DNA from: Gnetum montanum
Lineage: Eukaryota > Plantae > Gnetophyta
Direction: 5' to 3'
DNA: 64,000 nt
Assembly: GCA_015680685.1 (NCBI GenBank)
Contig: MNCI01000135.1
Coordinates: forward strand, 183,762 to 247,761
The notes below the pieces were generated by a model. That model made no database searches, was not told the origin of the DNA, and saw nothing but the letters and a program-made list of their open reading frames with translations. Positions 1 through 33,111 of this stretch are shown here, piece by piece. The position numbers and the translations under genes are program-made. The number at the start of each line of letters is the position of its first letter. Position 1 is the stretch's first letter.

Positions 1-3000
1 GTGGGAGAGAAGATCTAGGGACCTGGCGGCTCTGCGTTCTTGGCACGGGTCCCTCGAAAAAGGTCGCAACATCCTGTAGACCACGGATAGTGGGCAGGAC
101 GATTTCTCCTGTAGCTGGGGCCCCAAACAGCTGGCAATGGCAGATTCTGTGATATGAATCTCGCGTCCTTGGAAGTTGGTTCTGTCACCATTCCAGTTGG
201 CAAAAATCTCGTCGTCTGCAAGGTCCGGGTTGCTGACCAGCCGCTGCAACAGGCCAGACCAACCGCACCGGGTGACCAACCGCCAGAGCTCGTCATCATC
301 TCGGAAGGTGGCGCAGTCAGGCTCGAACGTTGGCGTGACACCCATGGTAGCCGTAAGCTTGCTCCACGCTTGGCAGGTCAACGCAATTATCTGTTGGGGA
401 GGAGGGGTCCTGTCTTGTTGAAAAATAGTGCGGTTGCGTGCCTTCCAAGCGACCCATAAAAGCATGGACGTCTAGGAGTTGCCTGTCAGCTGCCTCGGGG
501 GCGGGGGGCATCGTCGTTTCTTGCCAGGTGGCACGCATGCAGGGGTAGTCGTAAATGAAGTGCGTTATTGTTTCGGATGCAGCGTGACAGTGTGGACACG
601 TGTTGTCCTGCATGATGCCGCACCGTCTCAGGACGGTGCATACAGGGAGTGCCTTAGATTTGATTAGCCACAGAAACATTTTGATTTTTTCGGGGAGCCG
701 CTTGCGCCAGATCCGCTGCCAGCCATCCTCCGAGGGATATTTTTCTGTCAACAGGGTGCGTGGCTCGAGGTGGATCTAGCCCTGGGTCAACATTGTTTGT
801 GCGTGCTAGCAGATCGTCTGCCATGGCCGCGAGGCGCTCGTTCCAACATCCCACTGCGTGTACTTCCTTTGGGTGATGTAGGCCCACTGATTGAGCTCCC
901 CGTGTATGCGTGTTAGGCGGTGGAGGAGCCGTTGCTGTCCCAACATGATTTCATCCTCGAAGGACGTAATGCCCAGCCCCCCCATCTTACGAGGACGCAC
1001 AATGCGGGTACAATTAACGAGGTGAAGCTTGCCCCCCCCCCCCCCCCCCCCCCCCNNNNNNNNNNNNNNNNNNNNNNNNNNNNNNNNNNNNNNNNNNNNN
1101 NNNNNNNNNNNNNNNNNNNNNNNNNNNNNNNNNNNNNNNNNNNNNNNNNNNNNNNNNNNNNNNNNNNNNNNNNNNNNNNNNNNNNNNNNNNNNNNNNNNN
1201 NNNNNNNNNNNNNNNTGAATTTTTCCAGCCCCATTGGAAAAGCGGGATGCCCAGGTAGGTGTCGTTGGTTGTCCCCGGCTGGATGTCTAGGATTTGCACC
1301 ACCCTATCGTTCACTTGTGTATCAACCTTAATGAAGTGTGCTGCTGATTTGGTGCGGTTGATTTCCAATCCTAATTCTTCGGCCAATCGGGTCAGGGCTA
1401 TGTTAATACATCATGCTTGTGGGGCCGCTACCCGACTAAGTAACATGGTGTCATCGGCATAGTGTTCGACACGGCAGGCCACCCCAGCAATGTCCAATCC
1501 TTCCACCCCAGCCATGTTGCAATAATGTTGCATGAGGTCTATGGCAATGATGAAGAGTAGGGGCGAAAGTGGGTTACCCTGTCTCAAGCCCCTACCGGGA
1601 GATGAGAAACCCCACAACTACCCCCCCACATCGAAAGAGAAACCTGCGGAGGATTGGATGTGCAGACACAGTTGGATGAACCTTCGATCAAACCCTTTTT
1701 GATGCATAATGTCTTGCAAGGCTTCCCAATTGAGCGTGTCATATGCCTTAGCTATGTCAAGCTTCAAACATAGACTAGGGAAACCTGTGGTGCGGAGGGA
1801 ATGCAGGATCTCCTGCATGAGGAGAACCTGATCCTGGAGGGTCCTACCCTAAACAAAGCCAGCCTGATTGCTTCCCACCAATTTGGGCAGAAGAGGCCCA
1901 AGTCGGTTGACCAGGAGCTTGGAGAAGATCCTGATAAGGATGTTGCAAACTCCAATGGGACGAAAGTGTTCCGAGCGGTGGGCGTCCAACTGCTTGGGGA
2001 TGCACACGATTTGAGAGCAGTTGATTTCCCGTCGCACTTGCCACCTGGCCAACATGACGTTGAAAGCATCCAGGATATTGGGCCCCACAATATCCAGAAA
2101 ATTTTTGAAGAATTCAAGCGACCAGCCATCCAGTCCAGGTGCTTTCCCTCCTGGCATGTTGTTGATGGTGGTAGTTAGTTCCAGCCAAGAGAAGGGGGCC
2201 ATCAGTCGCCGGTTGTCCGCTTCGTGAAGCACCTTCACCACTTAGACCGAAATGGGTTTGGTAGGCCGCTTGGTCCAAATTTTCCCCTAGTATTGTGACA
2301 GCTCGTTGGCTATCCCTTGCGGGTCATCGATAACCTCGCTTGTCTGGGTTCAGAGGTAGCGGGCCTGGCTTTTGCCAAGCGTTTTGGCCATGGCAAAGAA
2401 GAATTTTGTCTGTTTGTCTCCTTCTCAGAGCCAGCTGATCCAGGAGTGCTGCCGCCAATACGTTTCCTCCTCCAGGTCAAGGTTCTGGAGTTGTTGTGAG
2501 AGACGCATCTCCTCCGAATGCAAGTCCTCCCCAGTCTCCTGCCGCGCCTGGACTTGTCCCAGCTGCTCACGAACCATCCTTAGGCCAGATCTGAAAGAGA
2601 ATTTCTCCTCCATCGGGAGGGCCTGAATGGCCCACTTTGGCCGGAGCAGGGCCTCTTTGAGGAAGTTCTGAGGATCAACCCGATTAGGTTGGTAATCAGC
2701 CCAGATATCCTCAACCAAAGGCCATAACCACGGTTTAGAGAGCCACGTGGCCTCGAACCGGAAGGGGCGTGGCGGCCGGGGCTTATCCGACCCAAGGGAA
2801 ACGACTAGCGAGCGATGGTTGGAGGTGACCCTTTCCTGCCCCGTCACGTGCATAGCGGTGCAGAGGAGGAGATCAGAGTTGACGCAAACCCGATTGATGT
2901 GGGAAAGGATACGGTTTGACCCTTTTCGCCGATTGCTCCAGTTGAACTGACAGTTCTTGATGGGTAAGTCAACCAGGGAGTGCGTAGCCAGGAAGTCAAG

Positions 3001-3748
3001 GAAAGCCTGTGCACCTGAAGGTGGGGGGGGGGGGGCAGCTCCCCCAGCTTTCTCCCAAGGGTGTAGGCGTTGGTTGGGGTCGCCCACCACCAGCCAGGAA
3101 TGGTGGTTTGGCACCAGCGGTGCCACCCGGTTCAGCTCCTGCAGCCGCGACTCCGAAGTCTGTGCCCCATAGAAGTTGGTTAGCCAGATCCCTTGGGCAG
3201 GAATTTGGACCGTGAGGGCCCATGGAGAGGCGTCTACCAAGCTCATGGTGTATTGTGCCAAGATGGCAAGACCCCCGGCTTTGCCCTGGCAGGGGTGCAG
3301 GTGGGTAGCCCAGCCCTCCCATTGGAGATGGCACGATTCTTCTGCTTGCAGTTTGGTTTCCTGGAGGCAGACGATGTCACAGTTTTCCTCTCTAACAATA
3401 CGACGCAGGGTATTTCTTTTATAGGGGGTGCCCTGTCCCTTGCAATTCCAGCTGAGAATCTTCATGTGCAACCAGAGGTGCAGCATTGGTAGACCTCCCG
3501 AAGGGTCTGTTGCTGTCTCAAGTCGATATTTCGTTGGGCTTGTTTGCTTCGGGATCTGGTCTTGGTCGGTCGGCCTTTGCGTCCCTCGCCATCCTGCACC
3601 ACAGGGCTGCATCCGGTCTCCTCGGCGGGGGACTCCTGCTTCTGACGCTGTCGGGTTCGGGTGCTGCCCCGAACAATGTTAACCCATTCCCCCAGAGGGG
3701 GAAGCTCTGGTTCCGGTTCCTGCGTGCTCGGCTGGATGATTGGTGATC
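1..3748 (-). mobile_element. L1-clade LINE copy 1 (ORF1 3' end + ORF2 EN-RT-zf-RVT + start of C-terminal accessory domain); runs off the left edge
   Basis: APE endonuclease motifs MKILSWNCKG, VCLQETK, VVGDPN, SNH, FRFEATWL (2425-3465); KAPGLDG, FRPIGVCN, KLDIAKAYD, GLRQGNPLSP, HYADD (1411-2241); YLGIP; zf-RVT KIKMFLWL..CPHC..ETITHF; LLWVAWKARNRTIF; then MGVTPTFEPDC from 345 leftwards. Frameshifts and stops present. Confidence 0.95.
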
Positions 3749-3796: not shown

Positions 3797-6530
3797 GTTC
3801 ATGTGGGTTGTGTGGGTTGGGATTATATTATAATAGAAAATGTACAAGATACATCAAAAAGGGGTGGGGGAGAGAACCCCCCCAAGAAGCCAAGAGGAGA
3901 GATCTCCTAAGGAAGACACATCTAGCAGCAAAAAGCGGCGAAACAGATCATAACATGTCAAACAGTAAACAGACCCTATCTCATGACCATGATCCCCAAC
4001 AAAATCAACAAACTGACAAGATAATTTTTTGATAAACTGGCAGAAACGACAAGCTATCACAGAATCGGTGGGGTTTCACAAGCACATCTGGGCCTTAACT
4101 CATTGTAGAACTTGTTCACAACATCCTGTTCATCCTTACAACTAAGGAAATATGCCACCTGTTGGAAAGTTTGGTACTTTTTCTCCACCTTGCTGAGGTC
4201 CTTGGATTTATCCAAGTGGTAGGCAAAGGAAACCTGTCGGACGAAAGAGCGAAGGTCATCCCATGAAGTGTTGATGTTTATGCCCCTTATGACATATGGG
4301 CATTGTCTAGAGCCCAACCAGTCCTTCACATTGGTTTCAGGATACTTCATTAATCTGATCCACATCTCCTCATGTTCTTGTCTCTTGGCCTCCTTCCTCT
4401 TGCCTCTCTCATTCTTGCCTCTTCTGCTTCATGCATAAGTTCAGCCTTGATGCTGTATCGAAGTTCATTTTCTACTCTGAAGTGCAATTCAATTGCTTCC
4501 CATTTGTGTGTCTGCCTAGCTTCCTCTGCTTCCTGTTTGTGCATCACCCTATCTTCCTCGTACTGAATTTGATGTCTTTGTGAGGCTTCCCACTTTAGAT
4601 GAATCTCCATGTTCTTGATAGCCTGCATAAGTTCTGTGGTTGCCTCCTGCTTTGGTTTATTCTTAATTTTTCTAACTCTTAGTTGAACATCATCTGCAAA
4701 TCTCTCTTTTGTCACCTTCTTCCAGGACTGCTTTAGAATCCTTTTGCTCTGCTCAAAGTGATCATGGAACTATGCTTTTAGCTCAACCCTTTAACTGCTC
4801 CTTCAGAATGCTAAATTAAGGATTTCCCTCATTCTGGATGATCCGATGAGATCCTTCCCATTTCACCGAACCTTCCACATGCAGCTCCCAAATAGCAGAG
4901 GAATCAACATCCCCCAAATTTAAATTAGGAGTGTTTGTCAATTGGTTAGCTGATCCCATGTAAGGCGTTGATGTTTATAGACTCTAGTGATGCTGGGTGC
5001 AGTCGGAGCCCACTGTGGGGCATGATTCCTCATATCAGCTTGCTAGAGAGCAAGAATTAATCCTGAGTGCTTATCCATTTGCCTTTGTTCTAATGCTGCC
5101 AGAAAGAATTTTGAAAGATTATCTTATCATCAAAGCAACAGGTACTAATTAAAGGTGAAGTGAGCACCCTACAATTTCCATGCATTCTCAGAGTGAATGA
5201 AAAATGTGTCTATGAATTTGGCAGCCTGATGCCAAAGTGAAGAAAGCTTAGAGTGTAAAACTTGACCACTGAACATCCACGGGATTGGGCCTTGAAAGAA
5301 AAGGTTAGCTTTGTGCAGGCTGGTGAGGTAGGAAGAATGAGCTCACCACTATAGGGAATGCCCAGGTACTTGCTGATGGACTCCTCTGTAAGTTGGATCT
5401 TCATGCCACGAGACTGAGTTGCATTACCACACCATTTGTTGACGAATTGTGTGTTCTTGAAGTCTTCATTACCACATAGTTTTGGCAGCAGTTCATCCCA
5501 ACTGATGGCCTCCTTTAGAGCCCTGAGCTCGACATTTGCTTGGAATTTGGCACATTGAGGCCTGAAAGTGGTTGTCACTCCCATAGCAATAGTGGCCTCC
5601 TTTCAAAGTCTCCAAGTAGAGCATGCTAGAATCGACAAATCACCTGGTATCTTAGCATTGGCTTTGATGCCTGCAAAGACCCAAACTTGTCTACTATAGC
5701 AACAATTGTAGAAGAGGTGCTCTGTTGTTTCCAAAGCATTAGAGTTGTAAAGCATACAATGTTCTTCCATGTTAAACTTTTGCACAGAAAGGAAAGAGCA
5801 AGTTAGAACTGCATGCCTTTGTAGCAACCAAGCAAACACTTTTATTTTCTCAGGCAGTCTGCCCTTCCACAAAATGTGCCACCCATGCATGGTGGGATAC
5901 TTATGATGTGTAAATTGCCTCTCTGTACCATGTATGGTAAATTGCGATTGAGTAATGAAATCAAAATGAGAACATAAACATTTCCATATCGTTGATGCCT
6001 TGAGGGTGCGCCATAGCTCATACTTCCTTCTCTCATGATTTGAATCCACAATGTGTCCTCATCATATTGAACACGATACATTAAATTATGCTGGCCCATC
6101 ATAATGTAGTCTTTGAAGTAGGTTACCCCCAGTCTTACCGCTCTTCTTGGTTTAGCCACAACTTCCCAACCAACCAAATGAACTTTAGGACCTCCCTTCC
6201 CCCCTGACTAGATGATGTTTTGGATCAAGCTATTCGCATTGTTAACACCTTTCTTGGGAGGTTGGCACATAGAGGCCATGTACCTAGCAATAGCAACCAA
6301 CACAAAATTTGCCAAAATAATTCTACCTTTACTGGTCAGGAAACATGTGCTTCAATGTTCAATTCTTATTTGGACCTTATGTGGGAAATTATTCCAAGTG
6401 CAAACCTTGTTCTACGAGAATATATGAATTCTCAGGTAAACATTTAGAATCAAGCCACTTCTGGTTGAAAGGAGTCTACAAATTTTTTCTTTTATGTTGG
6501 CATCAGTCTTGGTGAAATGAGCATGAGATG
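3797..6530 (-). mobile_element. 5'-truncated LINE copy 2 (ORF2 3' part: zf-RVT, accessory domain, coiled coil, J-domain, 3' UTR)
   Basis: HLVGWEVVAKP (~6180); LWKGRLPEKIKVFAWLL..CMLY..ETTEHLFYNC (5603-6049) in the same frame as MGVTTTFRPQC (5210-5584); E/K/R-rich ORF 4350-4715; J-like ORF 4057-4365. The 3' end runs into an N gap. Confidence 0.9.
4057..4365 (-). pseudogene. DnaJ/Hsp40 J-domain at the C-terminus of LINE copy 2 (HLD variant)
   Basis: CPYVIRGININTSWDDLRSFVRQVSFAYHLDKSKDLSKVEKKYQTFQQVAYFLS..EQDVVN fits the J-domain consensus (PYxxLG..S..EIK..YR..A..HPDK...F..I..AY..LS). Confidence 0.8.
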
Positions 6531-7058: not shown

Positions 7059-8009
7059 GTAAGACTTTAGTTTTTAGGTATTTGAATTGTTGGTAATCAT
7101 GAAAATTGTTATGTTATCCATTATACATTATCATTTTATGTTAATGCTTTGATGATATTGACAGTTATGTGGTGTACTGAAACTATAGGTTCTGGAAATA
7201 ATTTCTGGGATTAAATAATATTGGATATTACCATTGTGACAATAAATCTAATTCAAAAGTAATACTGCGTCTTTTTCAGCTAGTTTGATTTTCTGAACAT
7301 GTTGAAATGTCTAAGTGTTTTTTATCCTTTTTTTCGGTCTGAATTCCGGGATGTAAAAATAACTAAAATTCATTAGGAAATTTTAAAAATTAAATAAAAA
7401 CTTTTGTATATAGTCAAACATATCATACAGACTCAAATCTAGAAAAAATATGTCAAATTCATCATACATAATCATTTTCCAATGTCTCATTGTTTTTCTT
7501 AATTTCTCTTTTTAACTTATTTCCACTGTCTCATTGTTGTCCTTAATTTCTCTTTTTAACTTTATTTTCATGTGATAAAATGTGCCCCTTGTCTCATGTA
7601 TGATGACCTACGGACATGAAATGCATTTTATATCCTGGTTTGCCTTCAAGATTGCCACATTTGATATGTCATGTGAGGCCAAGAAGTGGGTACAGGGTAC
7701 ATGCAGTTTTTCTTGGGAGCCGTGTTTGATGCCAAACCATTAGGTCCCAATTCCCTAAGGACTCATAAGTAAAGTGATAGACTATCAAATGGCACACTAC
7801 CAAATTGGTTAAGTTAGTATTCACTACTTGACTAAGGATACTGATGCTCTAATAAACAAACACGCTAAATTAAATCTAAAACATAATAGTTACTAAATTA
7901 ATTTAAAACAGAACAGTGACAGATGCTTAAATTTAATGCTACAGAAACCATGGACTCATTTGGTGAAAAAACCTTTTCAGTCAACACTAGTAAAATGGAA
8001 CTTGAAAGA

Positions 8010-11000
8010 ATCTAAGATGAGCAGTAGCGTGAGCAGGTGTGGGAGTGGGTGTGGGAATGGTGGGCGCAAGGGAGGAGAGGAGCAGAGTGGGCATGGTGGG
8101 TGCGAGGGGGGAGGAGCCTCATAGGACCTTAATGAGGATGCGGGTGGGGGCATGGCAAGTGCAAAAAGGGGGGGTGGGGTGGTGGTGGGTTGCTCTTTGG
8201 CAAGAGTGGAGTTGGTGGAGATAGATAGGGGATGAACCAACAACATGAAGGTGGAGGGGGCGGGGCTTGGTAGCCAAGCGTTGGGGGTGTTGATGCCATT
8301 GTTTGGGAAGGGGCTACATGAGGTTGTGGGTCAAGGGCCTCCCAAGAGGGCCTATGTATGATGGATCTTAGCCTCATTGGCCATTTTGTTTCTTTGGGGT
8401 CTAGGCCTCTGCTTGACCTTGTTCGGAAATGGGCAGTTGCTATCTAGGCCCTTGACCAGGTCTAGGTGAGGTCTCTTGTTGCTAATCTTCTTTAGTTCAT
8501 TTTTCAGTCCCCTACAGACAAAGATAGGGTCCTTTTGGGGGAACCCTGGTTTTTTGGGGTGCATGGCATGGCGCTCACATATTGGTGACCGGAAGCTCAT
8601 AAGGAAACAAAGCTGTTCTCTTACACTCTTGTCTAGGTGCGTGTCTTTGGGGTGCCATGGGATCTTTGGATGGATGGCTTCCTAAGGACTTTGGCTGAAC
8701 AGTTTGGGGAATTTATCTCCTTTGATAAATTCACCACAATGAAGGAACGCATGGGCTACGCCTACTTCTGTGTGTGGGGATCATTATCCCCTAAAAAACT
8801 CCTAAAGGAAGTTATCATTGACTTGCCCTTAGGAGAGGAATGCTTAAATGTGAAATATGAGAATGTTTTGCGAACAAAGCCTACACCAAGCTGTGAAGCT
8901 CGTGGGCACCAGATGGCCTGTGCAACCTATGGAAAGACAAACCATTGCACTCATGAGTGTAGAGTGCACCCTAAGGCTCCCACAAAGGGACTAAAAGGGC
9001 TGAAAAGAAATATGGATGAGGGTGGGTGATTGCTAGTGGAGAAAAGGGGAAGTCGTTGCTGGTGTCCCCCTCCAGCAGGGCCTGCACATACATCTTCAAG
9101 AGGTTTTGATGAGAAATTGAAGATAGTGGCTGAAGTTGCAAATGGGTCCTTGGGTCCCTATGCCCCCCTGTTGACCATGAGTTGCATGTTGGAGCCTCGA
9201 CTAAGGATAGGGTGGAAACCAAATCCCCTACAAGCCTTGCTGAAACTCTAGTTTTGGAGATTGCTATGCTAGCTTTCGGTAACCTTACTTAGGGATGAGC
9301 TTCCTTTGCTTGGCGATTGGGTGTTGGCTATGCAGGGTTCTTCCAAGCCTTCATTTGATTTGGTAGCAGAGAGGATTTTCGTGGAAGATTCACATGGGTT
9401 CCTTGTGATAGATGAGCCAAAGCGGCCTAGTAGGCCCTCCAACATACAATTGCAGACCAAGAAAATGCACTTTGAAATTGACCTTGGGGCCTAGAAGATT
9501 GTCAAGGAGGTCTATAAGAAACAATATGTGAGTAGACTATGAAGATTCTCTCATGGAATTGCAAGGATAGGGTACCCCTTACAAAATAAATACGCCTAAG
9601 GAATTGGCTCAAGAAGAGAAGTGCTCGTTGGTATGTTTACAAGAAACTAAGTTGAATGCCACTAACTGTGATACCCTTCAATGGCAGGGTTGGTATTGTT
9701 ATTTTGTGCATTGCAGGGGATAGGCTGGGGGCCTAGCCACGTATCCCAAAATCCTTGTGGTGCTAGATGAGTTGTTTTGGAGCCTCATCGTGTTCATTCC
9801 TGTGGAGGGTCTTTGGGTTACGAATTTTAATAGGCCTCAAGTTTGGAGTGATAGGCTGCATGAGATTATCAAGGTGGCAGGGCAAATCCCTGATTCCAAA
9901 TCCTGGATTATCATTGGGGATTTTAATTAACATCTATGTTCCTTGGAAAAGATGAGTATAGGTGATGTATCTGAATCTTTCCTAGGAAGTCAGGAGTTTT
10001 TGCAATTATTGCATAGGCATAGTCTAGTGGATCTTGACATTAAGGGATGTCATTTCACTTGGAGCAATAGGAGTGGCCATGATTGTGTTATGTCCCATAT
10101 TGATAGTCTTGGTTCACGTTGAATTGCTCACTAGATATGAGATTCTGGTCCAATGTTGTGAATAGCAAGCCTCAGATCACTGGGCTCTAGTTTGTTCAAT
10201 TACCCCCCTTGGACCCCCCATTGGCTCCTTTTCGGTTTGAGTGGGCATGGCTGTCCAAATGTTGGTTGCGTCAATTGATTGAAGATACTTGGGCTCTTTA
10301 TCCTACTACCAACACCAACCCAAGGGACTAACTCAAACAGGGCCTCAGTTGCTTGAAGAAACGAATTAAGAGTTTATAGGTGACCTAGAAGTACTCATTC
10401 TAGGAAATTAGGAGTTGTCTTCAACAACAATTGGCTGCCATCCAGTCCATGCAAGAAAATGGGGAACTTTTGGATGAAGAGGAGCATAACCTGCTGGTGG
10501 AGTTGTAAAGTTTGGATGCCTAGGAGGAACAATCTTGGAAGGAGAGGTCAAGGGCGAGTTGGCTCTAAGAGGGGGATCAACATACTTGTTTTTTCTTCAC
10601 GGCGGCCAAGGCTAATTGTTAAGGCAAACAAATTAATAGCATTTATAGAGCGTCAACATGCCTACATAAGCCACAAGACATTGCTCAAGAAATACAAAAT
10701 TTTTTGCATACAGTCTAGTTTGGGGGAGATTCCTTCCCTCTTTCTATTTTGACGCAAAAGGTTGTCAGCAAAGTAGACAATATGTCCCTCATTGCCCCAA
10801 TCTCCATGGTGGAGGTCTCTTGTGTTATGGATTCACTTAAGGTTGCTAGAGCCACAGGCCCGTATGGGTGGCCCATCCAATTCTTTTGGGAATTCTTTGA
10901 TGTTTTGGGGAAAAATGTGTTGGACACTTTCAATCTTATGCTTAGGTGGGGACAATTCCGAAAGGAGATTACTTGCTCTAGAATTGTCTTATTGCATAAG

Positions 11001-14000
11001 ATTTCCAACCCCTTGCTCCTTGCTTATTACATACCAATTGGGGTGTGTAACACCTTACGTAGGGTGTTCACAAAGATTTTGGTGCCTCATCTTCAGCCAC
11101 TAATGCCCACCTTAGTTGGTTCCCACTAAGTTGGTTTCATTAAGGGGAGGTCATTTAAGATCAGATTCTCCTGCTACAAGAAGTGGTCCATTCCATCCAA
11201 CAATCCAAATTCCAGGTATGTGCATTAAACTAGATATCACAAAAGCTTATGATAGTATTCAATGGCAAGCCCTTAGGGAAGTCATGCTTAAGAAAGGGAT
11301 TCACCAGCATTTTGTGGACCCCTCCATCAACATCTAGAAGGCTAGTGCCTATTCTTTTGATCTAGGTTGTTGGTTCTAGTGGTTTTCCTCCCTCATCAAG
11401 GGGTTACGCTAGGGGGATCCTCTTTCACCCTACCTATTTATTATCATCATGGATACCATGCAAATGTACTGTAGGGAGGAGGATGTTTGGGGATTTAGAA
11501 TTGTAGGCACTGCATGTGCTACTGAGCATTACACTGATGATACCATCATCATGACCTGGGCTAGGATGCCACAAGCTCTTGCTATAATTAGGTGTTGAAC
11601 TGTTTGGCACAAGAGATTGGCTTACAACCAAATAGGGGGAAGTTTGTGGTGCACTTTTTCCACACAAAAGCATCGATTTGGTTGTAGGTGTGCCAGTCTC
11701 TTGGGATCTTGCCAGGAACTGAGCATGAGTCTTACTTGGGTATCCCCATGTTTATGTGGAATAAACAAGTCACATGGACAAGGATGATTCAATGGCTACT
11801 ATTGTGGGTCAAGCATTGGACTGTCCTTTATCTTGCTTGCCATAACCCACTATGTTGCTTTTGTTGTCACTCTTCTTGTAGGGGTGATCAATAAAATCAA
11901 CCAAATCATCAGTAATTTCATGTGGTATGGTAGGAAAGGTGGGAATTGTCTGCACTTGATGTGCTGGGATACCGTGGCACGGCCCAAAGTTGTAGGAGGC
12001 TTGGGGGTGCTAAAATTTGAAGATGTCCTTTTGATGGGGCATCAGACTATGATCAATTAGTTGATGCAAGACTTGGGAAGCAAACCTTAATGGGCCCATA
12101 TCATGGCTTCAAAGTACATGCCTTGGGTTGCAGCACCAAGGAATTCACATGTGTGGTGAAACATTTGTGTTCATGCACACAAGTTGCTTCATGGCGGAAT
12201 GGTGGGATTGGCGTCCAAGGACACCATCAAGGTCAAGTATCCTGATTAGGACGGTTGGAAGTGTCTTTGGAGGGGCGGCTTCCTAAGAAAATCAAGTGGC
12301 TCACTCGACTTATTTTGCATGGTGCCTTACCGCTACGTGCATGACTCAAAGCATGGGGGAGGGGTTGGGTAATCAAATATGATGACTATCTATTATGTTG
12401 CTCATGCTCCGAATTTGCGACTCATCTTTTTGTCCATTGCTAGTTTGCTACTGAGGTGTGGGCTAAAGTAGGAACCTTTGTCACCTTGGGTGTGTCTAGG
12501 GACTCCTTTCATATTGTTGTTTTGTGGCAAATTTGGAAAGCCCGAAATGCTAGGATTTTCCATGGCCCACCTTATCTTGCCCCTGTGCATGTCGCTCTCT
12601 TAGCGCGTAGACTATGGGTTTAAGTGACAGCAACAATGGGGGTTATATTGACATTCGAGTTGGAGGTGGAGATGTTTTGTCAGAAGAGGCAACTCTGGGA
12701 TGTTGTGAGGTAGATGGGATGGGTTGAAGTGCTGTTGCTTCTTGTTGGTGAACCTGATCTTCCTGATAGTAGTTTCTTTTGGCAATGGCGAGGGGATTCG
12801 ATGATTTTCAGAGGGGTTTAGATTACCCTAATTGAGGATGCATTGGCGACTTACCTTGGGACGTTGACATCAGGTGAGGTCATCCTGCCTATGGGGAGGG
12901 GCCTATAAGATGCTAAGGGCTTCTTTGCTAGGCCGATCCCTAAGATTGCTAGTAGGCATGTACTGTGGTCTGCACTACCTCTCCTATGGCAAGAGCTAGT
13001 TGAAGTGGTTGATTGTTACTTTGTGCAGTTTGATAATGCTTGGAAGTTGCAAGGGGCTCACTTTGCCTTCCTACACTGCATGAGGGACGCATGGCTGGTG
13101 AATCTCCCCAAGTTCTTTCTAGCATCATTGCGTTGTGAGTGTAATGGGTGGAACTTGGGGCTCATTCTGGCCCTTTGGCAGGTGGCATAGCCTTTGGACC
13201 CTCCTGCTTGCTCTCTCCCTATTACTCGTGTTTATTGTAGGCGACATTTGTGTTAGGATGCCTCATCATCTTTAGCTCCAACTATGGGGGTTTCTAAGGA
13301 GTTGTCCTTTCCGTGGCCTCCTAGGGAAGTTGGGGTTTCAATGAATGCTAAGGTTGGAAGAAAGGAAGGACATAATGATTTGGAAGATAGACTCTAGCAG
13401 GTTCTGGCAAAAACTAAGGCTAGGGTCTATGAGGAGGAAAGGATGAGATGGTAGGCGGTTATGTTTCAATAGGCGCTGGATGTTTAGGCGAGGGCCTCGG
13501 CTGAGCACCGTTGACTTTGGGAGGAGGTTGAGGAGGTGTGGAGATAACATGAGTGTCGAGAGGCTAGTATTTGGCAGGAAAGGGAGGATGATCTTAGGTG
13601 GGAGAACATGGTGGAAATCCTCCAAGAGGAGGAGGATAGGAAATGTCTGGAGGAAGAAGCCAAAGTGTGGAGAGGTAGGACCCTTTTTGAAGAATAATAG
13701 ATGAGTGAGTGGCTTGATCAAGCTCACGAGTCTGAAGCTAGATGTTGGCTGTTGGAGGGGTGTTGCCCCTATGTAATTATGGACATCAACAAGAATGTGT
13801 CTTGGGCCACGTTGCTATGCTACATCCGGTCTTCTGCTGCTAGATTCCACCTGGATAAGATGAAAAATCAGCTTTTAGCGGAGATACAATGGAAGGAAGA
13901 GGAGTTCATTTGGTTGCAGCAGGCTACAACGTTCATGCCTTCTAAACACCAAAGGGAAACTCTTGACTAGGTTCACTCTAGGGTGCAACACATATGTGCC

Positions 14001-14400
14001 TGCTCCAGCTTGTTCCACTAGGGGTAATGGAGTGTTGTTTTGGGTGTTTGTTGTGTTTTTGGGGGTTGTTTCTAGGGTGCTGGGTGGTTGGTTTTGTTTG
14101 ATTTTTGTTTCAGTTTGTCTATGTACTTTTGTCTTTTCTGTTGGTCTGTTTCTATGTTTTTCGGATGCTTCCTTGCCAAATGCAGTATGCCATAGGAGGC
14201 CTATTGCAGGGACCCATTTTGCTTTGATGCTTTATGCTTTTTTGTGGCCTAAGGGTGGTCCTTAGGTGTAGTGGTGGGTTTGGGGATTAAGTCCCTAGGG
14301 GGGTGTGTCTCTCTCTTGTTGTTGGATCTAGGTCCTGATTGTACATACTTTTATTCTTAATTTATTTACTGGGCCCAACCTTTTTCCAAAAAAGAAAAAA
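8010..14400 (+). mobile_element. Near full-length decayed LINE copy 3 (ORF1 + extended ORF2 + GT-rich 3' UTR + A-rich tail)
   Basis: ORF1 DUF4283-like (RVFGVPWDLW..FGEFISFD) with CxxxGKxxHxxxxC; ORF2 ATG at 9539 (MKILSWNC), LQETK, KLDITKAYD, HYTDDT, YLGIP, LWQIWKARN, extension to ~14021; A-rich tail ~14388-14400. Confidence 0.93.
12501..14021 (+). pseudogene. C-terminal extension of LINE ORF2: accessory domain + coiled coil + J-domain + CxC
   Basis: One frame with no frameshift from LWQIWKARNARIF through MGVILTFE (ATG 12636), VNLPKFFLASL, the E/R-rich segment, CPYVIMDINKNVSWATLLCYIRSSAARFHLDK and HICACSSLFH; interrupted only by point stops. Confidence 0.85.
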
Positions 14401-14707
14401 AGGAATTTGAAAAAAAATAAAAGTGAAATTATGGTTGCCTTCACAAGATCCACATATCTACAAGATAAATTTTGAAAGAACAAAACCATTTTATTATTTA
14501 AATCTAAAACTTCTAGGCTAGAACCTTATTTTATAGTTCATCATAACTAGTAGAATCTTCATTGTGATCAACAACAAAGTTTCAACAAGAGATAAAGATG
14601 TTGCTGAACAAAAGGCAATGGCTTAGCTGGTAGGGGTGGAGGATGTTCTTGGTGGGATGTTGGGGACGGGTAGGGGATGTGGTGGTTCTCTCTTAGTGGC
14701 CGTTCGA

Positions 14708-14821
14708 CACTATGGACATTTTGGACTGGAGTATCTCCTTTCAGCTCTCAATGGGGATTGTTGTCACTATGGACATTTTGGACTGGAGTATCTCCTTTCA
14801 GCTTTCAATGGGGATTGTTGT
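14708..14821 (+). repeat. 57-bp in-frame tandem duplication within the LINE endonuclease remnant
   Basis: CACTATGGACATTTTGG...GATTGTTGT occurs twice (starts 14708 and 14765), 1 mismatch. Confidence 0.9.
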
Positions 14822-17800
14822 CACGAACTTCTATGGGCCACATCAATGTGAGGAGAGGCTCTACGAGTTGCAGAAGATTGTTGCATTGGTGGCCGACAAA
14901 CAATAATGGGTGTTGGTTGGGAACTTCAACCAGTGGCTGTTTGCCTTGAAGAAGTTGGACAAGGGATTGCATGAGTTGCCAAGGGCTTAGTTGTTTCTTC
15001 ACTTCTTGGATGTGCATGGGCTGGTGGATTTGGAAATTAGGGATGCCAATTTACGTGGTGTAATGGGTGCAAAGGTGTGGCTCCGATGTTGACCAGGATC
15101 GATTAGGTTTGGGTAGCATTGGCTCTGCTTCTATAGAGGGGTGTGACGATTTGGGGTCTGGCACGGGTGGCTTCAAACCACAGGCTGTTGTTGTGCATGA
15201 TGGGGCCCCAAGACCAAGGGAGATTGTTGGTTCTTTGGTTTGAATGATCATGGAGGATATCTGGCAAAGTTACAATAGGGTTTATGAGCCCTAGGAATTT
15301 TTGAAACAAGGATTAACTATGGTCAAGCACAATATCAGACAAATGTGGGTGGGTGATAAATATTCATTTTGGGTGTGTTGTGGGGAGTTGCTCAAACATT
15401 TGACAATGGTCCAAGCAAGGTAGGAACAAGGGGATCACTAGGGGAATGTAGAGTTGGAGGTGCTTGCAGAGCTTCACGCTTTGGAGGCTGATGAGGAGAA
15501 CTACTGGTGGCAACGGAGCAGGAGGGATTTGCTGAGGGAGGAAGATTGTAATTCCTGTTTCTTTCTTGTGGCAGCATGGTTGGCACGACATTCCAAAAGC
15601 ATTAAGTGTCTCATGGTGAATGGCTTGTAGGTGGAGGGGCAAGAAAAGGTGGCAAGGGTGTTACTCGATTTTTGGTTGGATATTTGGTGGCATTGGTAGG
15701 TCTCACCGATCATCATTCAAATTGAAAAAAATTTAAATGAGGTAGAAAACGGGCGTTTGTTGGTCCTGTTCATGTGGGCAGAATTAAGGCTAGCGTTGGC
15801 TTCGATGAAGGGGGGCCTGGCCTTGGGGCCAGATGGGTGCCTGGTAGAGTTCTTCTAGGCATTTATTGATGTGCTTGAGGACAACTTGTTGGATGCTTTT
15901 AATGCTATGCTACAATGTGGGGCGATTAGATGGGAAATTAATTGTGCTCGGGTGGTGGTTATTCCTAAGATGGCCAATCTATCTTGTCCCACGGATTTTT
16001 GGCCCATTGGCATTTGCAACATGTTGATGTGGCTCTTCTTGAAGTTGCTAGTGACTCGTCTGGGGTTGTTGATGCTACGTTTGGTGGGGGTGTAGTAGGT
16101 GGGTTTTGTCAAGGATAGGCACATATAGGACTAGATCATTTTGGTGCAGGAAGTCATTCATTTGCTTCGAGTGAGTAAGTTTTCAGGGATGTGCTTGAAG
16201 TTGGACATTATCAAAGCTTATGATACAGTTGCTTGGGATGTGCTTTGGGAGGTTATGCTTCGCAAAGGTTTCCACCACACTTCATCAATTTGTGCATTGA
16301 CATTTAGAGGTCGGGGGCTTTTTCCCTGGATTTGGAGGGTAGGCTGTGGGGATTTGAGACCATTGGGAGGGGACTTCGACAAGGGGATCCTTTGTCTCCA
16401 TTCCTGTTCATTCTGGTGATGGATACGATGTGGACTTACTATGAAGCTAAGCGAGTGAGGGGGTTGGATGTCAATGGGGTGCAGTGCATGGTGGAACATT
16501 ATGTGGACGACACCATTTTATTCTCGCAGGCTATCATGCCACAAGCATAGGTGATCAATAGAGCCCTCCACTGCATGAGGGAGGAGATTGGGCTCCAAAT
16601 AAATCGGGGTAAGTTGGCTATTCATCGATTAAATGTTGAAATGGGGATTTAGGGAAGGATCATTTAAGTGTTTGGGGATGTTGCCCGTACCAGCGGACGA
16701 CAAGTATTTGGGGCTCCCATTGTTTGATTGGCATTGTTGTAGAGCTTGGGGGGGGGGGGGGGGGGGGGGGGCTTGCTACGACATATATAGGAAAGGGTTT
16801 CCCATTGGATGACTAGATTCTTGTCCCAAGCTAGTAGGGTGCTTTAGGCTAGGGTGGTGTTGTCGGCCATTGCATGATTTGCAGTTAGTGCATCTTTTCC
16901 TCCGGCTGGGACAATTGACCAGGTGGATCGATTGATTCACAATTTTACGTGGTTGGGGGATAAAGGGGGTAACCGTTTGCATTTGGTGCTGTGGGACAAG
17001 GTGGCAAGGCCTAAGGATGTGAGAAGTTTGGGCCTTCTGAGATTCTATGTTGTTCTGGCGATGGGGCATTAGGCCCTTTTGAGTAAGTTAATGTTGCAGG
17101 ATTTGACTCCTGCATAGTGGGTTACTCTCCTGTGACGCAAGTACAAACCTTGGGAAGTAGGAAGGAATGTTTCAAAAATCTGATAGGCGAGTTGTGGGCA
17201 TGTGCAGATGCTGATGACAGCAAGGTCATTTAATGCTCCTCCTAAATAGCTGATCCGGGATAGATTTCCTTTAACTGGGGGGTGGTGCCAAGTGTGGAAG
17301 GGGTGTCTATTTGAAAAGATTAAAATGTTTCTTTGGTTATTGTGCCATGGTGCAATTCTTGTATGATGGAAATTGCAATGGTGTGACATGAAAATCGAGG
17401 ACAAGTGTCCCCTATGCATGGTAGGGATCGAAACAACCATGCACTTTGCTCATGAATGCATTTTTACCCAGCAGGTGTGGAGAGCGGCCAAGTTGCTAGT
17501 GGGAACGATGCACAGCAGGGATTCTTTGGCTATTGTGATCTTGTGGAGATTGTGGTGCACACATAATCTCTGAGTGTTTTGGGGGGTGCAACTGTCATTA
17601 CTTGCACAAATTGCTACAGAAGGTGTGCATTTGTGATAGGAGGCTTTGTCCACGATCAGGGTGACACCAACCATTGAACCCTTGTGTGAGGAATTCCAAC
17701 AAAACGAGGTGTTGTGGTGTCTTGTGATGTAGGTAGGGTGGGCTGAGCTGCTTCCTTGATTGCGAGGGGACCTTGAGCTAGAGGATGGGCCTTTTTTCAT

Positions 17801-18529
17801 CAACTAGGTGGGGGATTGGATGGTTTTTCATGGTACTTGGATCAAACTCACGGAGGTGGCCATTGCATGATTACTTTAGGTGCCAGTAGCAGGGGAGGAG
17901 GTCCCCTTGCGTAGCAGTGGTATGCAGGATGCTAGAGATTTTTTCCCTAGGGCTGTCCCTAAGACGAGGAGTGGGCAAGTGCCAAAGAAGGCTCTGGAGC
18001 TGCTGTGGCAGGAGGCAGCGGTCCTTGTGGATAGATTCTTTGTCGATTCCAGGAATGCTTGGAACTTTCTAGGGCTCCATTTTACTTTGATAAGCTGCCT
18101 GCGTTAGGGGTGCAGTGCTAATCTACCTTGTTTCTTTTTGGCTATGCTGCAGAGGTAGTGGCGTGGGTGCCATTTTGGTCTTAGTTTGGCATTGTGGAGA
18201 GCCGTAGGGGTTGCTACTCATTTGGAGGGGGTGGGGCCCTTAGTTTGTGTGGTTTATGTGTGGTGATTGCATTGTGCACCGCCGAATGTTGTGGAGCTTT
18301 CATTTGAGTTGGAGGGGTCTTGGCATGAGAGGAGGGGGGNNNNNNNNNNNNNNNNNNNNNNNNNNNNNNNNNNNNNNNNNNNNNNNNNNNNNNNNNNNNN
18401 NNNNNNNNNNNGGGGGGAGTTGACCTTGGGAGGGCATGTCGGGGGAGGAGGTACATGGGGAGGGGTTGGGGGATGTTTCTGGGGTTGAAGTGCTTAGGGT
18501 TTCATAGGAGGAGGTTGAAGACCATACAC

Positions 18530-19209
18530 GGGGGTTGGGGGGGTTCCCAAACTCAAGGGAGCTTGTCCATTGTGGGGGTGGAGCAGGGGCAGGCTGTAGA
18601 GAGGTTGGTGTGGGAGGGGCCGTGCAGTAGGTTGAGGTCATTTGGATGACCATCAAAGAAGAAAGAATCTGGTGGGATTTGGTCAAGGTGGTGTTGCGGC
18701 TTGAACATGAGGTGGAGCTTCGGGATAGAGTGACGTAGGAGTTGGAGGATGAGGCTAGGCAACAAAATGGGAGGTGGCCAAGTGTCGTGCCCGGGAAGAA
18801 GAGGAGGAGACTTAGATTTGGCGTTAGCTAGATAAGGCCCAAGGTGACAAGGTGCACTCTTGGTTGTAGGAGGGCATCTTATGTTATTCTCAATATTGAT
18901 AGGAATGCCCTGTGGTCGGCCTTGTGGTGGTACATCTGCAGGTAGGGAAGAGAATTCCACCCTGACAAGTAGGGGAGCGAGGTGGTGGAGGCTTTCAAAT
19001 GCTTTTTGGAGGAAACGGTCTTTGTTGACATGGAGCTACATAGGAATGTCCTAGATGCTATCCATGTGCAGGAGTGTGCTTATTGTCCTTGTACTCGATT
19101 GCTGTATCGACTGTAACCCCAGGGGGGTTGAGGGATGGTGTTTCCCCTGTCTTTGTTGGTTTTTGCATTAGTTGGGTTGGGTTGGGAGTTTGTTAGTGGA
19201 GGAGGGTTT

Positions 19210-19240
<31 letters not shown>

Positions 19241-20230
19241 GGGAAGCTTTGGTGTATAGGGGTGGAACTGGTAGGGGGTTTTGTCTAATCCTTACTGAGT
19301 TTTTAATGTTCAGGAGCCCTTTGTGCATCACAAGAGTGGGGGTGGGGGTGTGAGGGCGCATGCCCGCCGGGGGGGGGGGGGGGGTTCCCGAACTCAAGGG
19401 AGCTCGTTCGTTGTGGGGGTGGAGAAGGGGCAGGCTGTAGAGAGGTTGGTGTGGGAGGAGCGGTGGCACTAGGGGGAGGAGTTTCAATGGGAAAGTGAAC
19501 TCTAGGCCATGCAGTAGGTTGAGGCCGTTTGGATGACCATCAAAGAAGAAAGAATCTGGTGGGATTTGGTTGAGGTGGTGTTGTGGCTTGAACAAGAGGT
19601 GGAGCTTCGGGATAGAGTGAGGTAGGAGTTGGAGGATGAGGCTAGGCAACGAAATGGGAGGCGGCCAAGTGTCATGCCTAGGAAGAAGAGGAGGAGGCTC
19701 AGATTTGGCGTTAGCTAGATAAGGCCCAAGTTGACAAGGCACACTCTTGCTTGTAGGAGGGCATCTTATGTTATCCTCAATATTGATAGGAATGGCCCGT
19801 GGTCGGCCTTGTGGTGGCACATCTGCAGGTAGGGAAGAGAATTCCACCCTGACAAGTAGGGGAGCAAGGTGGTGGAGGCTTTCAAATGCTTTATGGAGGA
19901 AATGATCTTTGTTGACATGGAGCCACATTGGGATGTCCTGGATGCTATCCATGTGCAGGAGTGCGCTTATTGTCTTTGTACTCGACTGTAGCCTTGGCCC
20001 CGGGGGGGGGGGGGGGGGGGGGNGGATGGTGTTTCCCCTATCTTTGTTGGTTTTATTTTGTTGCTTTTTGCGCTGGTTGGGTTGGGTTGGGAGTTTGTCA
20101 AGGGAGGGGGGTTTTGGGGGGCTTTGGTGTATAGGGGTGGAACTAGTAGGGGGTTTTGCCTAATGGCCCTCCTTGCTGAGTTTTTTGTGTTTAGGAGCCC
20201 TTTGTGCATCGCAAGAGTGGGGGGTGGGGG
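18530..20230 (+). repeat. ~0.85-0.89 kb tandem duplication of the coiled coil/J-domain/3' UTR of LINE copy 4
   Basis: GTTCCC-AACTCAAGGGAGC at ~18543 and ~19384; CACCCTGACAAG at 18958 and 19845; the units are similar but not identical. Confidence 0.9.
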
Positions 20231-20619
20231 GTAGGGTGTGTGGTGTTTGGTGGGGCATCTAGTTTCCCCCGGTTTTGGGAGCTTGGTTTGTATATTCTGG
20301 AAGTTTTCTCATGTAATATAGCCCGAATTCCTCTCTCTCTCTCTCTCCCCCCCCCCACAAAAAAAAAGAGAAGTTTCAACAAGTTATCTTTTTGGCCAAC
20401 TACCAATCATACAAAAGGGCCTGATCCTATAACAATAAATTATATTTTGTCCATAACCATCCAGGTGTCTGATGTTGTAATGTTAAATTATATTTTGTTT
20501 ATAACTTTCTAGGGATATTTTGTCCATGACTTTCTAAGGAACCCAATTATGTAATGCTAAATTATATTTTGAAGAAAGAGATGAAATGAAATTGTTCTCT
20601 TTATTGAAGTTTATGAAAG

Positions 20620-23600
20620 GAGCCATGAAATTGGCTAGCGAAGGAGCAGAGAAACAGGCGAGGGGGGGGGGGGGGGGGGNNNNNNNNNNNNNNNNNNNNN
20701 NNNNNNNNNNNNNNNNNNNNNNNNNNNNNNNNNNNNNNNNNNNNNNNNNNNNNNNNNNNNNNNNNNNNNNNNNNNNNNNNNNNNNNNNNNNNNNNNNNNN
20801 NNNNNNNNNNNNNNNNNNNNNNNNNNNNNNNNNNNNNNNNNNNNNNNNNNNNNNNNNNNNNNNNNNNNGCGAGTGGGGGGCGAACGTAGGTAAGACAGCC
20901 GAAGGTGGAGCAACAGGTGCGGGAAACGCAAACTCGGGACACAACGTAGGACACACGAGCGGCGGTGAACTGACAAAAAATAGGAATGGTCCGGACCATA
21001 GGGGGACAAATATCGAGCACCAAATGGGAAGATTGAGGCTCACTCCCATATTGACTGCACCATGCGCCTCCGGGTCTGCGGACCACTAATGGAAGGGGTG
21101 CGGACGATGCAACGGAGCCTTATTGGCTGTTTCGTGTCCCTAGGAGCTCGCCCTCGGATGGAGTTAATCCATAGGAGGGTACAAGAAAATTGGAAGATTG
21201 GACAAGTTGAGGTTTGGAGCTAATATGAGGAGTTGCTTCTATTCATTTTCCCGACCCAGTAGGATCGGGACACGGTGTTGCTTGGGGGACCGTGGTTCTA
21301 TGGCGCCGAAGGGCTAGCTTTAACCCCTTGGTGACTGGGGGCACACTGTGAGAAAGACCTGTTTGCTTGTGCCCCGATGTGGGTAAGGGTGTTTAGGATT
21401 CCATGGGAGATGTGGAACTTGGGGTCCCTAGAACAGATGGTGGGGTATTTTGGGGAGTTAATCGCTTTCGACAGGGTCACGCAGTCAATGGCGTGGATGC
21501 GGTTTGCCCATTTTTGCATGTGGCGGAATTTGTTTGCCAAGGATCTCATTAGGGAAATAGTGTTGGAGCTCCCAGGAGGGGAGGAACACCTCCAGGTTGA
21601 GTTTGAAAACCTGGAGGTAGAGCCAGGCATGGAACAAGGACTGAAGGCCAAAGAGGGCAAGAGGGGAGGCTATGCAAGCTGTGGGAAACCCGGCCACAGG
21701 GAAGTTGATTGTTGCTTTCGGATGGCAGGGCCAACGCGGATGTGGGATCAAGTCCGGCAATATGTTCAGGGCGGGGATTGGGTTACGATAGGATGTAAGG
21801 GTCGACCAAACCCGCCACCAACTCAACTACCCCCCCAAAAATCGTCATCTCCCTCTAACCCCTTCCAACCACCTCGAACACAACCCCCACCCCCACCCCC
21901 CACTCTGCCTCCACCCCAGGAGACCCCAGGAATTTCTTACAGGGCCAAGGAGACCCCAGGAATTTTCTCAAAGACGGCTTGCTTCGGTTGAAGTGGGCTA
22001 TCCAGGCCTTGCCAATGGAGGACAAATTCTCCTTTAGGATGGGATAAGCTAACTTAGATCCAGACCAGACAGGAGGCTGGGGAGGACTTGCATGAAGAAG
22101 AGCAGAATATTCTGCAGCAACTCTAGGGCCTTGACTTGGAGGAGGAGACATACTAGAAACAAAGATCACAGATTAGATGGCTTTAGGAGGGGGACAGACA
22201 AATGAACTTCTTCTTTGCTGTTGCCAAGACACGGGGATGGAGCCAGCCACATAGTTTGCACACCACGGAGAGGGGGGGGGGGGGATAATTGATGAGCCAT
22301 AGAGCATCGCTAGGGAGTTGACACACTATTGGGAGAAGATCTAGGCCAAGCAACCCACAAAGCCCATATCGGTCCAAATTGACTAGGTGCTAAACGAGGA
22401 GGATAACGCTCGATTGCTGGCTCCGTTCTCATGGCAGGAACTCTTAGCCACAATCAATGACATGCTGGGAGGAAAGGTGCCTGGACTGGATGGTTGGAGC
22501 CTTGAATTTTTCAAGACCTTCTTGAATATAGTGGGACCCAACATCCTGGACATGTTCAACCTTATGCTAGCCAAGAGGCAGGTCTGAAGGGAGCTCAATT
22601 GTTCTCGAATAGTGTGCATCCCCAAGCAGTCAGAGAACATTCCGTTCAGAACAATTAGAGATACCTACTTGGGTATCCCACTTTTCCAGTGGGGACGGTG
22701 TATGTCTTGGGGAATGCTGTTGGAGATAGTTGAAAGACGGATGGGACACTGGGCCAATCGTTTCCTGACTAGGAAGTGGCGGTTGGTGGTGGCGTCGGGG
22801 CTACTCACGGTAGTAACCTGGTTTGTGGCCGCGGTTGCCACCCCTCCGAGTGCCTTTATTGACAAACTCAACATTCGAATCCGACGGCTTGTCTGGTTGG
22901 GGGGCAGAAGGTGGGGGGGGAGGGGCAAAATTCACCCTGCGAGCTGGGACCGGGTTGCGCGCCCCCGTAACACGGGGGGGGGGGGGGGAATTCCCCTTTG
23001 GGGGGGGGGGGGGGGTGGGGGTTCCGGTAACCGGGGGGGGGGGGGGGGGGAACCCCCTCGGGGGGGGGGGGGGGGGTTCGGGTAACGGGGGGGGGGGGGG
23101 GGGAGGTTGCGGGGGGGGGGGGGGGGGGATTTTCCCTTGGGTGGGGGGGGGGGGGGGGGGTTGGGTATTTCCAAATTTGAGGACGAGCTAATGATGGGAT
23201 AGCAGCGCCTGTTACTTTGATTTACGAGCCAGCTTGGGGAGCCGGCCCAGTGGGTTTGGGTAATGAATGCGAAGTACAGAAGGTGGGAGGCGGGGGCACA
23301 GGACTCGAAGCCTTGGCAGACGCTCTGCGGCCACGCGCGCAAAATGTAGACACAAGGGTGGTCATTTCTTGAGCTGCGTTGCCTGTTGGTAGCCATTTAC
23401 CCACCGGTACCAGGCTAGCGGCAAATTTGGAAGGGGCGGCTGCTCGAGAAAATTAAAGTGTTCCTATGGTTAATTAAGAACGACCTGCTACTTGTTTGGG
23501 CACTTTTATCTAGACGACGCCTTGTCTTGGATGACACTTGTCCCCTGTGCGGTGGCACGCCCGAGACCATGCAGCACTTCATTTACCAATGCGCCTACAT

Positions 23601-33000: not shown

Positions 33001-33111
33001 TTTGCCTAAAGAAGCTGGATTTGGGATGACAACAAATCCTGTTAAATTAGGAAACTACCAATAAGAATTACAGCTGTAAACAACCCTTAAAAATTGATCT
33101 AGATTTCCACA
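27030..33111 (-). mobile_element. Ty1/copia LTR retrotransposon B nested in the RT of copia A
   Basis: LTRs 27030-27314 and 32827-33111 (TG..CA); TSD GCAAT/GCAAC; PBS rc GCTTTGATACCA 32815-32826; PPT 27315-27326; gag HKLNGQNYLQW; integrase HSDVWGP; RT GCKWIFTIK, YVDYI; RNase H DANWAG..KHVEID. It splits copia A at KNVVGC|KWIF. Confidence 0.95.
29254..30260 (-). mobile_element. Short 5'-truncated LINE (copy C) inside copia B, with intact-HPD J-domain
   Basis: Poly(T) on the + strand ~29255-29266; VNLPLY-like end of the accessory domain ~30150-30260; stop-free coiled coil plus WLRGGRCPYLMLGINSESSWGRLRRHIRRTSAQCHPDAG (HPD at 29545-29553). Confidence 0.88.

Follow-up and report, generated by a model that had tools for sequence, protein, structure and literature searches.

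What does the second open reading frame (ORF2) of a plant long interspersed nuclear element (LINE) carry behind its zinc-binding tail, and could that extra part tie the element to the host chaperone Hsp70? The question is raised by positions 12501-14021 of a 64,000-nucleotide stretch of Gnetum montanum DNA (contig MNCI01000135.1, positions 183,762 to 247,761; hereafter the window), an interval at the 3′ end of the coding region of a decayed LINE, here called copy 3. A preliminary description of the window held that ORF2 of this family ends in a J-domain of the DnaJ/Hsp40 type. One old L1-type LINE family has left eight copies or fragments in the window, all of them decayed: six J-bearing insertions and two further copies, c1 and c54. 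On the whole, we consider it probable that this old LINE carried, behind its zf-RVT domain, a module of accessory domain, charged helix and J-domain, either fused to ORF2 or separated from it by a TGA codon, and we propose that the module loaded host Hsp70.

Copy 3 is about 6.4 kb long, bounded by a candidate target-site duplication, and is made up of the following parts (UTR, untranslated region).

7992-8010 (+), candidate 5′ target-site duplication; partner at 14397-14415
8637-9029 (+), ORF1 remnant, the end of a DUF4283 domain and a Cys/His knuckle (PF14111, E 6.7e-05, below cut-off)
9250-12623 (+), decayed ORF2 with endonuclease, reverse transcriptase (RT) and zinc-binding tail; it closes at TAA 12621, and its 5′ limit is approximate
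12615-12638 (+), junction, with TGG at codon -7 (12615), TAA at codon -5 (12621) and ATG at 12636
12636-13190 (+), accessory domain of about 190 amino acids, uncharacterised, with collinear matches in seven copies
13395-13700 (+), charged helical linker of about 100 amino acids (coiled coil or single alpha-helix)
13767-13967 (+), J-like domain, with an HLD triplet at 13848-13856
13968-14021 (+), short Cys-containing C-terminal tail behind a decay stop; family stop codon at 14019
14022-14396 (+), G/T-rich 3′UTR with an A-rich tail at 14385-14396

The two duplication halves match at 16 of 19 positions by local alignment, a score reached by 2.8% of shuffles, which makes them weak evidence. The RVT_1 match of this copy is likewise weak (11116-11334, E 0.0043), and the terminal plant L1 motif of its ORF2 begins at 12522. 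From there, one frame of 500 codons runs to the stop at 14019-14021. The preliminary description was right that no frameshift interrupts this frame, but the frame holds 15 internal stop codons (16 with the terminal one: 11 TAG, 4 TAA and 1 TGA). Copy 3 is therefore a decayed pseudogene, and its "single frame" means frame continuity only. Other copies run past the point of the copy-3 decay stop into a similar tail.

The copy-3 tail, used as a tblastn query, recovered all seven J-like modules at the places previously assigned to them: 4114-4338(-), 13548-13967, 18847-19056, 19767-19913, 24891-25139, 29545-29685(-) and 42731-42982. These represent six insertions and one tandem duplicate. Besides copy 3, the family members in the window are as follows.

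1-3612 (-), c1, cut by the window start: endonuclease, RT, zf-RVT, TGG, ATG 345, start of the accessory domain
4057-6049 (-), c5731: zf-RVT, TGA, ATG 5584, accessory domain, linker, J (HLD) at 4114-4338
17367-19116 (+), c17: zf-RVT, TGA, former ATG 17655, accessory domain, J (HPD) at 18847-19056
19371-20230 (+), tandem duplicate of the c17 J part and 3′UTR; J (HPD) at 19767-19913
21377-25459 (+), c23: ORF1, ORF2, TGG, ATG 23784, accessory domain, linker, J (HLD) at 24891-25139, stop at 25197, A14 tail at 25446-25459
29254-30260 (-), 5′-truncated LINE 3′ fragment: end of the accessory domain, linker, J (HPD) at 29545-29685, 12-base poly(A)
41953-43537 (+), c41: C-terminal half of the accessory domain, linker, J (HLD) at 42731-42982, A-rich run near 43513
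53863-54663 (-), c54: zf-RVT, TGA, ATG 54306, accessory domain; no J part, the copy ending at another repeat

Accessory domain, linker and J part are collinear in all five copies in which tblastn allowed their order to be assessed (5731-4114(-), 17430-19056, 23751-25139, 30260-29545(-) and 41953-42982). Two further accessory domains come without a J part, one cut by the window start (465-2(-)) and the other stopping at the other repeat (54519-53863(-)). The whole module thus measures about 460-510 codons: a domain of about 190 amino acids, a charged helix of about 100 amino acids, and a C-terminal J-domain with a Cys-containing tail. In four copies, E, K, R, Q and D make up 45-66% of the linker, which has almost no P or G; this composition indicates a long charged helix. 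The copies had been described as very diverged in DNA, and indeed their identity to one another is 66-68% or undetectable; the exception is the tandem duplicate, where 18530-19348 and 19371-20230 are still 80% identical. The ratio of nonsynonymous to synonymous substitution rates (dN/dS) in that pair is 0.9, as expected of neutral drift since the tandem duplication.

That the J-bearing module belongs to an L1-type LINE, as the preliminary description had it, is supported by several features. An APE-type endonuclease (Exo_endo_phos, PF03372) is matched at 2425-3609(-) in c1 (E 4.4e-12), and zf-RVT (PF13966) scores above cut-off in c1, c5731 and c54 (E 1e-12 to 1e-14), where it lies directly 5′ of the accessory domain; with c17, zf-RVT precedes the accessory domain in four copies. 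Matches to the DUF4283-type ORF1 (PF14111) stay below the cut-off of 27.2 bits, with scores of 23 and 26.6. A-tails follow the module stop by 250-530 nucleotides in three copies, and in a fourth, a 12-base poly(A) lies beyond an assembly gap of unknown size. Furthermore, the truncated fragment 29254-30260(-), about 1 kb long, is nested in a copia element, with the copia RT ORF on one side and the integrase ORF on the other; the LINE family hence remained active beyond the time of the copia insertion. Since 5′-truncated 3′ fragments are the product of target-primed reverse transcription, the J-module must have lain inside the LINE transcript. The host of this nested fragment is a Ty1/copia element at 27030-33111(-), whose long terminal repeats (LTRs; 27030-27314 and 32827-33111) are 90.6% identical and whose RT/integrase ORFs lie at 27322-29123 and 30827-31288.

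Homology of the module's C-terminus to J-domains is well supported by sequence comparison. All queries were stop-free natural pieces of the copies, left unrepaired, with X marking the breaks within scripts. In the modules, helix I still shows the motif C-P-Y-V-I and helix II is basic, and the loop triplet reads HPD in three and HLD in four of them; a helix pattern with an HPD/HLD loop had been noticed from the letters. PF00226 (DnaJ) was the best family match for two diverged copies, starting from profile position 2 in both, with E-values of 0.0054 (the J piece of the nested fragment 29254-30260(-)) and 0.04, and of 0.0027 in another run. When a profile of the J copies was compared with all PDB chain sequences, J-domain proteins made up 35 of 36 matches and then 33 of 33. 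The profile of nine J pieces gave a best E-value of 0.0041 and aligned with chain residues from about 6 to 69, that is, with the whole domain; an accessory-domain profile put through the same PDB search matched nothing. In the ESM Atlas, 29 of the 30 named neighbour clusters of a 93-amino-acid piece (4060-4338(-)) carry PF00226, with a top score of 0.91 and a recognition value of 3156, which is over the tool's benchmark.

The loop triplet deserves separate attention. The closest pair of J modules differs at this site. HPD occurs in three modules from two lineages, with the proline codons CCT, CCT and CCC, and the four HLD modules have the leucine codons TTG, CTG, CTA and CTT. A CTN codon is one C-to-T step from a proline codon; TTG is two steps away, or one step from the leucine codon CTG. 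The second C of the proline codon has a CNG context, and plants are known to methylate such sites. This context, together with TAG as the commonest stop in copy 3, as would come from decay of CAG, points to C-to-T decay. The simplest reading of the codons is that the HLD variants arose by post-insertion C-to-T decay at a CHG site, and the codons alone leave room for an HLD subfamily.

The copies also record how the module evolved. Synonymous sites were saturated and a classical dN/dS analysis failed, so nucleotide identity by codon position was used instead. For the six independent J modules, pairwise identity at codon positions 1, 2 and 3 was 0.54, 0.62 and 0.35, and for the accessory domain it was 0.53/0.60/0.33 and 0.62/0.67/0.34; protein-guided alignment inflates these figures somewhat, not to the extent observed. 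In the closest J pair, the proportion of nonsynonymous differences (pN) was 0.21 versus a synonymous proportion (pS) of 0.85. The similarity is well above chance and confined to the protein frame: the mean pairwise J score was 106 in frame, whereas the two shifted frames gave 32 and 45 and codon shuffles 23. Such a codon-position bias with saturated third positions shows a long divergence during which the module was kept as protein, that is, under purifying selection. We considered passive transduction of a piece of host sequence as another source of the module and rejected it, since every lineage keeps the module at the same place and conserves its protein sequence.

Accessory-domain pieces of the window copies have no Pfam match, and the ESM Atlas was uninformative about them. 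An exhaustive search of 1.84 billion representative proteins with an accessory-domain profile gave 11 weak matches. The closest relative is a 91-amino-acid ORF from a Welwitschia mirabilis transcriptome, which groups with the LINE copies at 99/99 support, and other matches lead to at least 60 gene models of Ginkgo biloba without Pfam annotation; apart from the Welwitschia fragment, the databases searched yielded nothing close to the family. Thus, the nearest protein relatives of the family are from gymnosperms. The Ginkgo models (Gb_...; P0006 and P0012-P0078) are 250-490 amino acids long, are homologous to the accessory domain and share its Met-Gly start; P0001 carries the domain twice. One distant relative, P0005, alone gives a match to PF20167 (Transposase_32), with E 0.003 and 17.9 bits versus 45. 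We rejected a PMD/Transposase_32 identity of the accessory domain as unproven; no piece from the window gives this match.

How the module was joined to ORF2 depends on a short junction. In all copies, the accessory domain opens with an ATG in the context RNNATGG, mutated to ATC in c17; the first bases of these codons lie at 345(-), 5584(-), 12636, 17655 (now ATC), 23784 and 54306(-). The stand-alone relatives of the accessory domain and the Welwitschia transcript ORF start at the equivalent Met. The codon at -7 before the ATG, always in the ORF2 frame, is TGG in c1, copy 3 and c23 and TGA in c5731, c17 and c54. At other conserved Trp codons, these three TGA copies have stops in 0 of 4, 1 of 6 and 2 of 6 cases. 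The chance of three independent TGG-to-TGA hits is therefore about 0.006 or less, as a rough product of these Trp decay rates. Comparison of the three copies with one another shows saturation of synonymous sites, and a TGA shared by mutually saturated copies was most likely carried by active elements. In our reading of these codons, both fused and TGA-separated forms would have existed in working elements, and some members of the family probably expressed the module from an in-frame ORF3 or through readthrough of the stop. In TGG lineages the module would have been fused to ORF2; in TGA lineages, ribosomes would either have reinitiated at the ATG, yielding a third protein, or have read through the TGA. 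The earlier statement that ORF2 ends in a J-domain thus describes one of two states of the junction, the one with TGG.

Two other histories of the junction have to be weighed against such a mixed family. According to the first of them, the J-domain would be the C-terminus of a single ORF2 polyprotein throughout the family, and all junction stops would be post-insertion decay. In five copies the frame is the same before and after the junction, half of the six junctions listed above (c1, copy 3 and c23) have TGG at codon -7, the six spacer codons look conserved as a peptide with their differences at third positions, and Trp-to-stop decay is seen elsewhere in c17 and c54. What makes this history unlikely, in our view, is that three very diverged copies all have TGA and never TAG, with a joint chance below about 1%, that a conserved ATG in good context comes next, and that the stand-alone relatives and the Welwitschia ORF begin at that very Met. 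These same features, namely TGA at -7 in three deep lineages, the Kozak-like ATG, and accessory-domain homologues that are stand-alone Ginkgo gene models of about 250-490 amino acids, would instead suit a module that was ancestrally an ORF3, a trans-acting accessory factor with, for example, an anti-silencing function, and was fused to ORF2 secondarily in one lineage. Yet the strict in-frame layout and the constant 21-nucleotide spacer would be superfluous for a separate ORF, and TGA followed by A is a strong terminator, after which reinitiation behind a very long ORF2 would be inefficient. Furthermore, the tree of copies that could have polarised TGG versus TGA is an unresolved star, from which the ancestral state cannot be read. 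An ancestral ORF3 is possible and somewhat better placed than the single polyprotein, though we remain doubtful of it.

The remaining explanation denies the J-like segment the function of a J-domain: it would be either helices similar by chance, or a captured host fragment whose Hsp70 activity was lost (HLD) and which has some other role or no role. It has to be weighed with all the observations that count against a J-bearing LINE recruiting Hsp70. The best PF00226 score is 17.2 bits, below the gathering threshold of 27.8, and the pieces of the copy-3 tail, the J piece included, have no Pfam match; the DnaJ family was hence recovered as a best match, but not above threshold, and since the scores come from pseudogene pieces they describe the copies at hand and say nothing of the ancestral protein. 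AlphaFold models of the J part, made from two shallow alignments, have a helix order compatible with a J fold at low confidence only (predicted local distance difference test, 60.6 and 54.3), too poor to help. Foldseek and VIA-align on the first of them gave generic helical matches, none significant, an outcome that carries no weight either way. HLD in four of the seven modules would disable a canonical J-domain, and the codons alone cannot date this change as post-insertion. No protein with both RT and J was found among the 1.84 billion representatives searched with the accessory-domain profile, and a word-indexed search with the J profile among proteins of 50-157 amino acids was blank for such a protein as well. 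No intact copy of the family was seen among the window copies. Finally, in RNA from four runs of the same species (about 2 billion letters each, about 51 million read records), copy 3 drew 75 partial matches with a depth of at most 1.2, mostly in conserved ORF1 and RT stretches; its J bin drew none, the reads being too few to judge expression, and such sparse reads have no bearing on active family members. The subthreshold Pfam scores, the poor models and the HLD triplets do favour a segment without J function. On the other side stand the PDB matches (33 of 33) and Atlas neighbours (29 of 30) that are J-domains, a signature of purifying selection equal to that of the neighbouring domain, the retention of HPD in two independent lineages, and the CNG context of the proline-codon C with the TAG-rich stops of copy 3, which point to C-to-T decay. 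Considering these, we regard a segment without J-domain function as quite improbable.

Reads of runs X15 and X16, compared with 8500-14450, match partly at ORF1 (about 8700-8735) and RT (about 11157-11230) and then run into unlike sequence, indicating that related LINE copies elsewhere in the genome are transcribed.

For the module as we prefer to read it, J-domain biochemistry suggests a role. A J-domain docks on ATP-bound Hsp70 via its HPD loop and triggers hydrolysis, whereupon Hsp70 clamps the cargo of the J-protein. By analogy, the accessory domain or the helix might hold the element's own ribonucleoprotein (RNP) or ORF2 protein (ORF2p), and the J-domain could stimulate host Hsp70 through its HPD loop and deliver the chaperone to the element's proteins or RNP. 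Hsp70 loaded in this way may help to fold, assemble or remodel ORF2p and the RNP. Recruitment of Hsp70 by the module is something we infer from its sequence. A need for Hsp70 is plausible, since human L1 ORF2p complexes contain HSPA8 and HSPA1A (PMC5821459). An anti-silencing role of the module is also conceivable, given that methyl-reader complexes of plants include J-proteins (PMC10651127). The fullest version of this idea, that a gymnosperm LINE evolved its own J-domain co-chaperone, as an ORF2p tail or a TGA-separated third protein, and commandeered Hsp70 for RNP assembly, integration or counter-silencing, we put forward tentatively, as falling a little short of probable.

Several further observations concern the neighbourhood of the copies. 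A 57-bp unit repeated 2.1 times (98% identity) lies at 14708-14824, just 3′ of copy 3, within overlapping short ORFs. Runs of N flanked by poly-G/poly-C occur at 806-1234, 18330-18410, 20600-21000, 22967-23128, 29317-29496 and 29900-30135, the one at 22967-23128 including a G-rich "tandem repeat". These runs with their poly-G/poly-C flanks look like assembly or gap-filling artefacts, and such regions truncate two LINE copies. Another repeat is present in two 74%-identical copies, 46981-48507 and 52149-53556, whose internal tandem arrays have units of 214 bp (48025-48452, 99%), 64/32 bp and 73-169 bp. The copy at 52149-53556 adjoins c54 at the place expected for its J part. Two ORFs of 165 and 175 amino acids at 49103-51150(-) resemble the gag/protease part of an LTR retrotransposon. 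Related species carry part of the locus.

We found no description of a LINE or other non-LTR element with a J-domain or DnaJ in the full-text literature, in agreement with the preliminary description; Repbase and Dfam lie outside the scope of that search. Some plant L1s carry an archaeal-type RNase H at the ORF2 C-terminus. Plant L1-clade LINEs share with the present family the same ORF2 domains, a poly(A) tail, 5′ truncation and nested insertion, as well as, by its subthreshold matches, an ORF1 of the DUF4283/CCHC type, and in them, too, a foreign module was added at the C-terminus of ORF2. In contrast to those elements, the present family is without RNase H; in its place stand the uncharacterised domain, the charged helix and the J-domain, which may form an in-frame ORF of their own. 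In insects, R1 and TRAS LINEs carry a virus-derived superfamily 1 (SF1) helicase domain at the C-terminus of ORF2 (PMC4686597, PMC5563155). As in the present family, the extra C-terminal domain was gained and then kept through diversification, whereas clade, host and domain differ, an enzyme of viral origin standing there in place of a co-chaperone module. The nearest precedents are thus LINEs with other gained C-terminal domains, for example the viral helicase of R1/TRAS.

Cellular J-domain proteins (DnaJ/Hsp40, PF00226), in particular those of class C with a lone J-domain, share with the LINE module the helix I-III pattern, the HPD of three modules and an alignment over the whole domain. Unlike DnaJ/Hsp40, the LINE J is C-terminal, lacks G/F (glycine/phenylalanine) and zinc-finger regions and is encoded by a retrotransposon; its copies score below the Pfam cut-off and four have HLD. 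Among viruses, polyomavirus T antigens carry J-domains, and the hepadnaviral reverse transcriptase depends on chaperones. These are alike as genetic parasites that tie host Hsp70 to replication proteins, as we propose for the LINE. They are viruses and not LINEs, however, and the likeness is functional, implying no homology beyond the J-domain. SILENZIO, a plant chromatin J-protein, is part of the MBD5/6 complex (PMC10651127). Here, a J-domain acts at silenced plant transposons, which makes an anti-silencing or mimicry role of the LINE J conceivable. Proteins of the SILENZIO type differ in being host genes with other partner domains, and no specific likeness to the LINE J was seen, without a search aimed at it.

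J-domains are adaptors that decide where Hsp70 works, and certain viruses encode one themselves. In human L1 ORF2p complexes, Hsp70s are present without a dedicated adaptor known to us. A LINE with a hard-wired adaptor would therefore be a natural handle on the part of Hsp70 in non-LTR retrotransposition. Besides, the TGG/TGA junction may offer a case of ORF fusion, fission or readthrough inside a LINE, and the accessory domain ties the element to a large unannotated gymnosperm protein family. If the proposal made here is true, it would give the first J-protein encoded by a transposon and, for the TGA lineages, a rare LINE with three ORFs.

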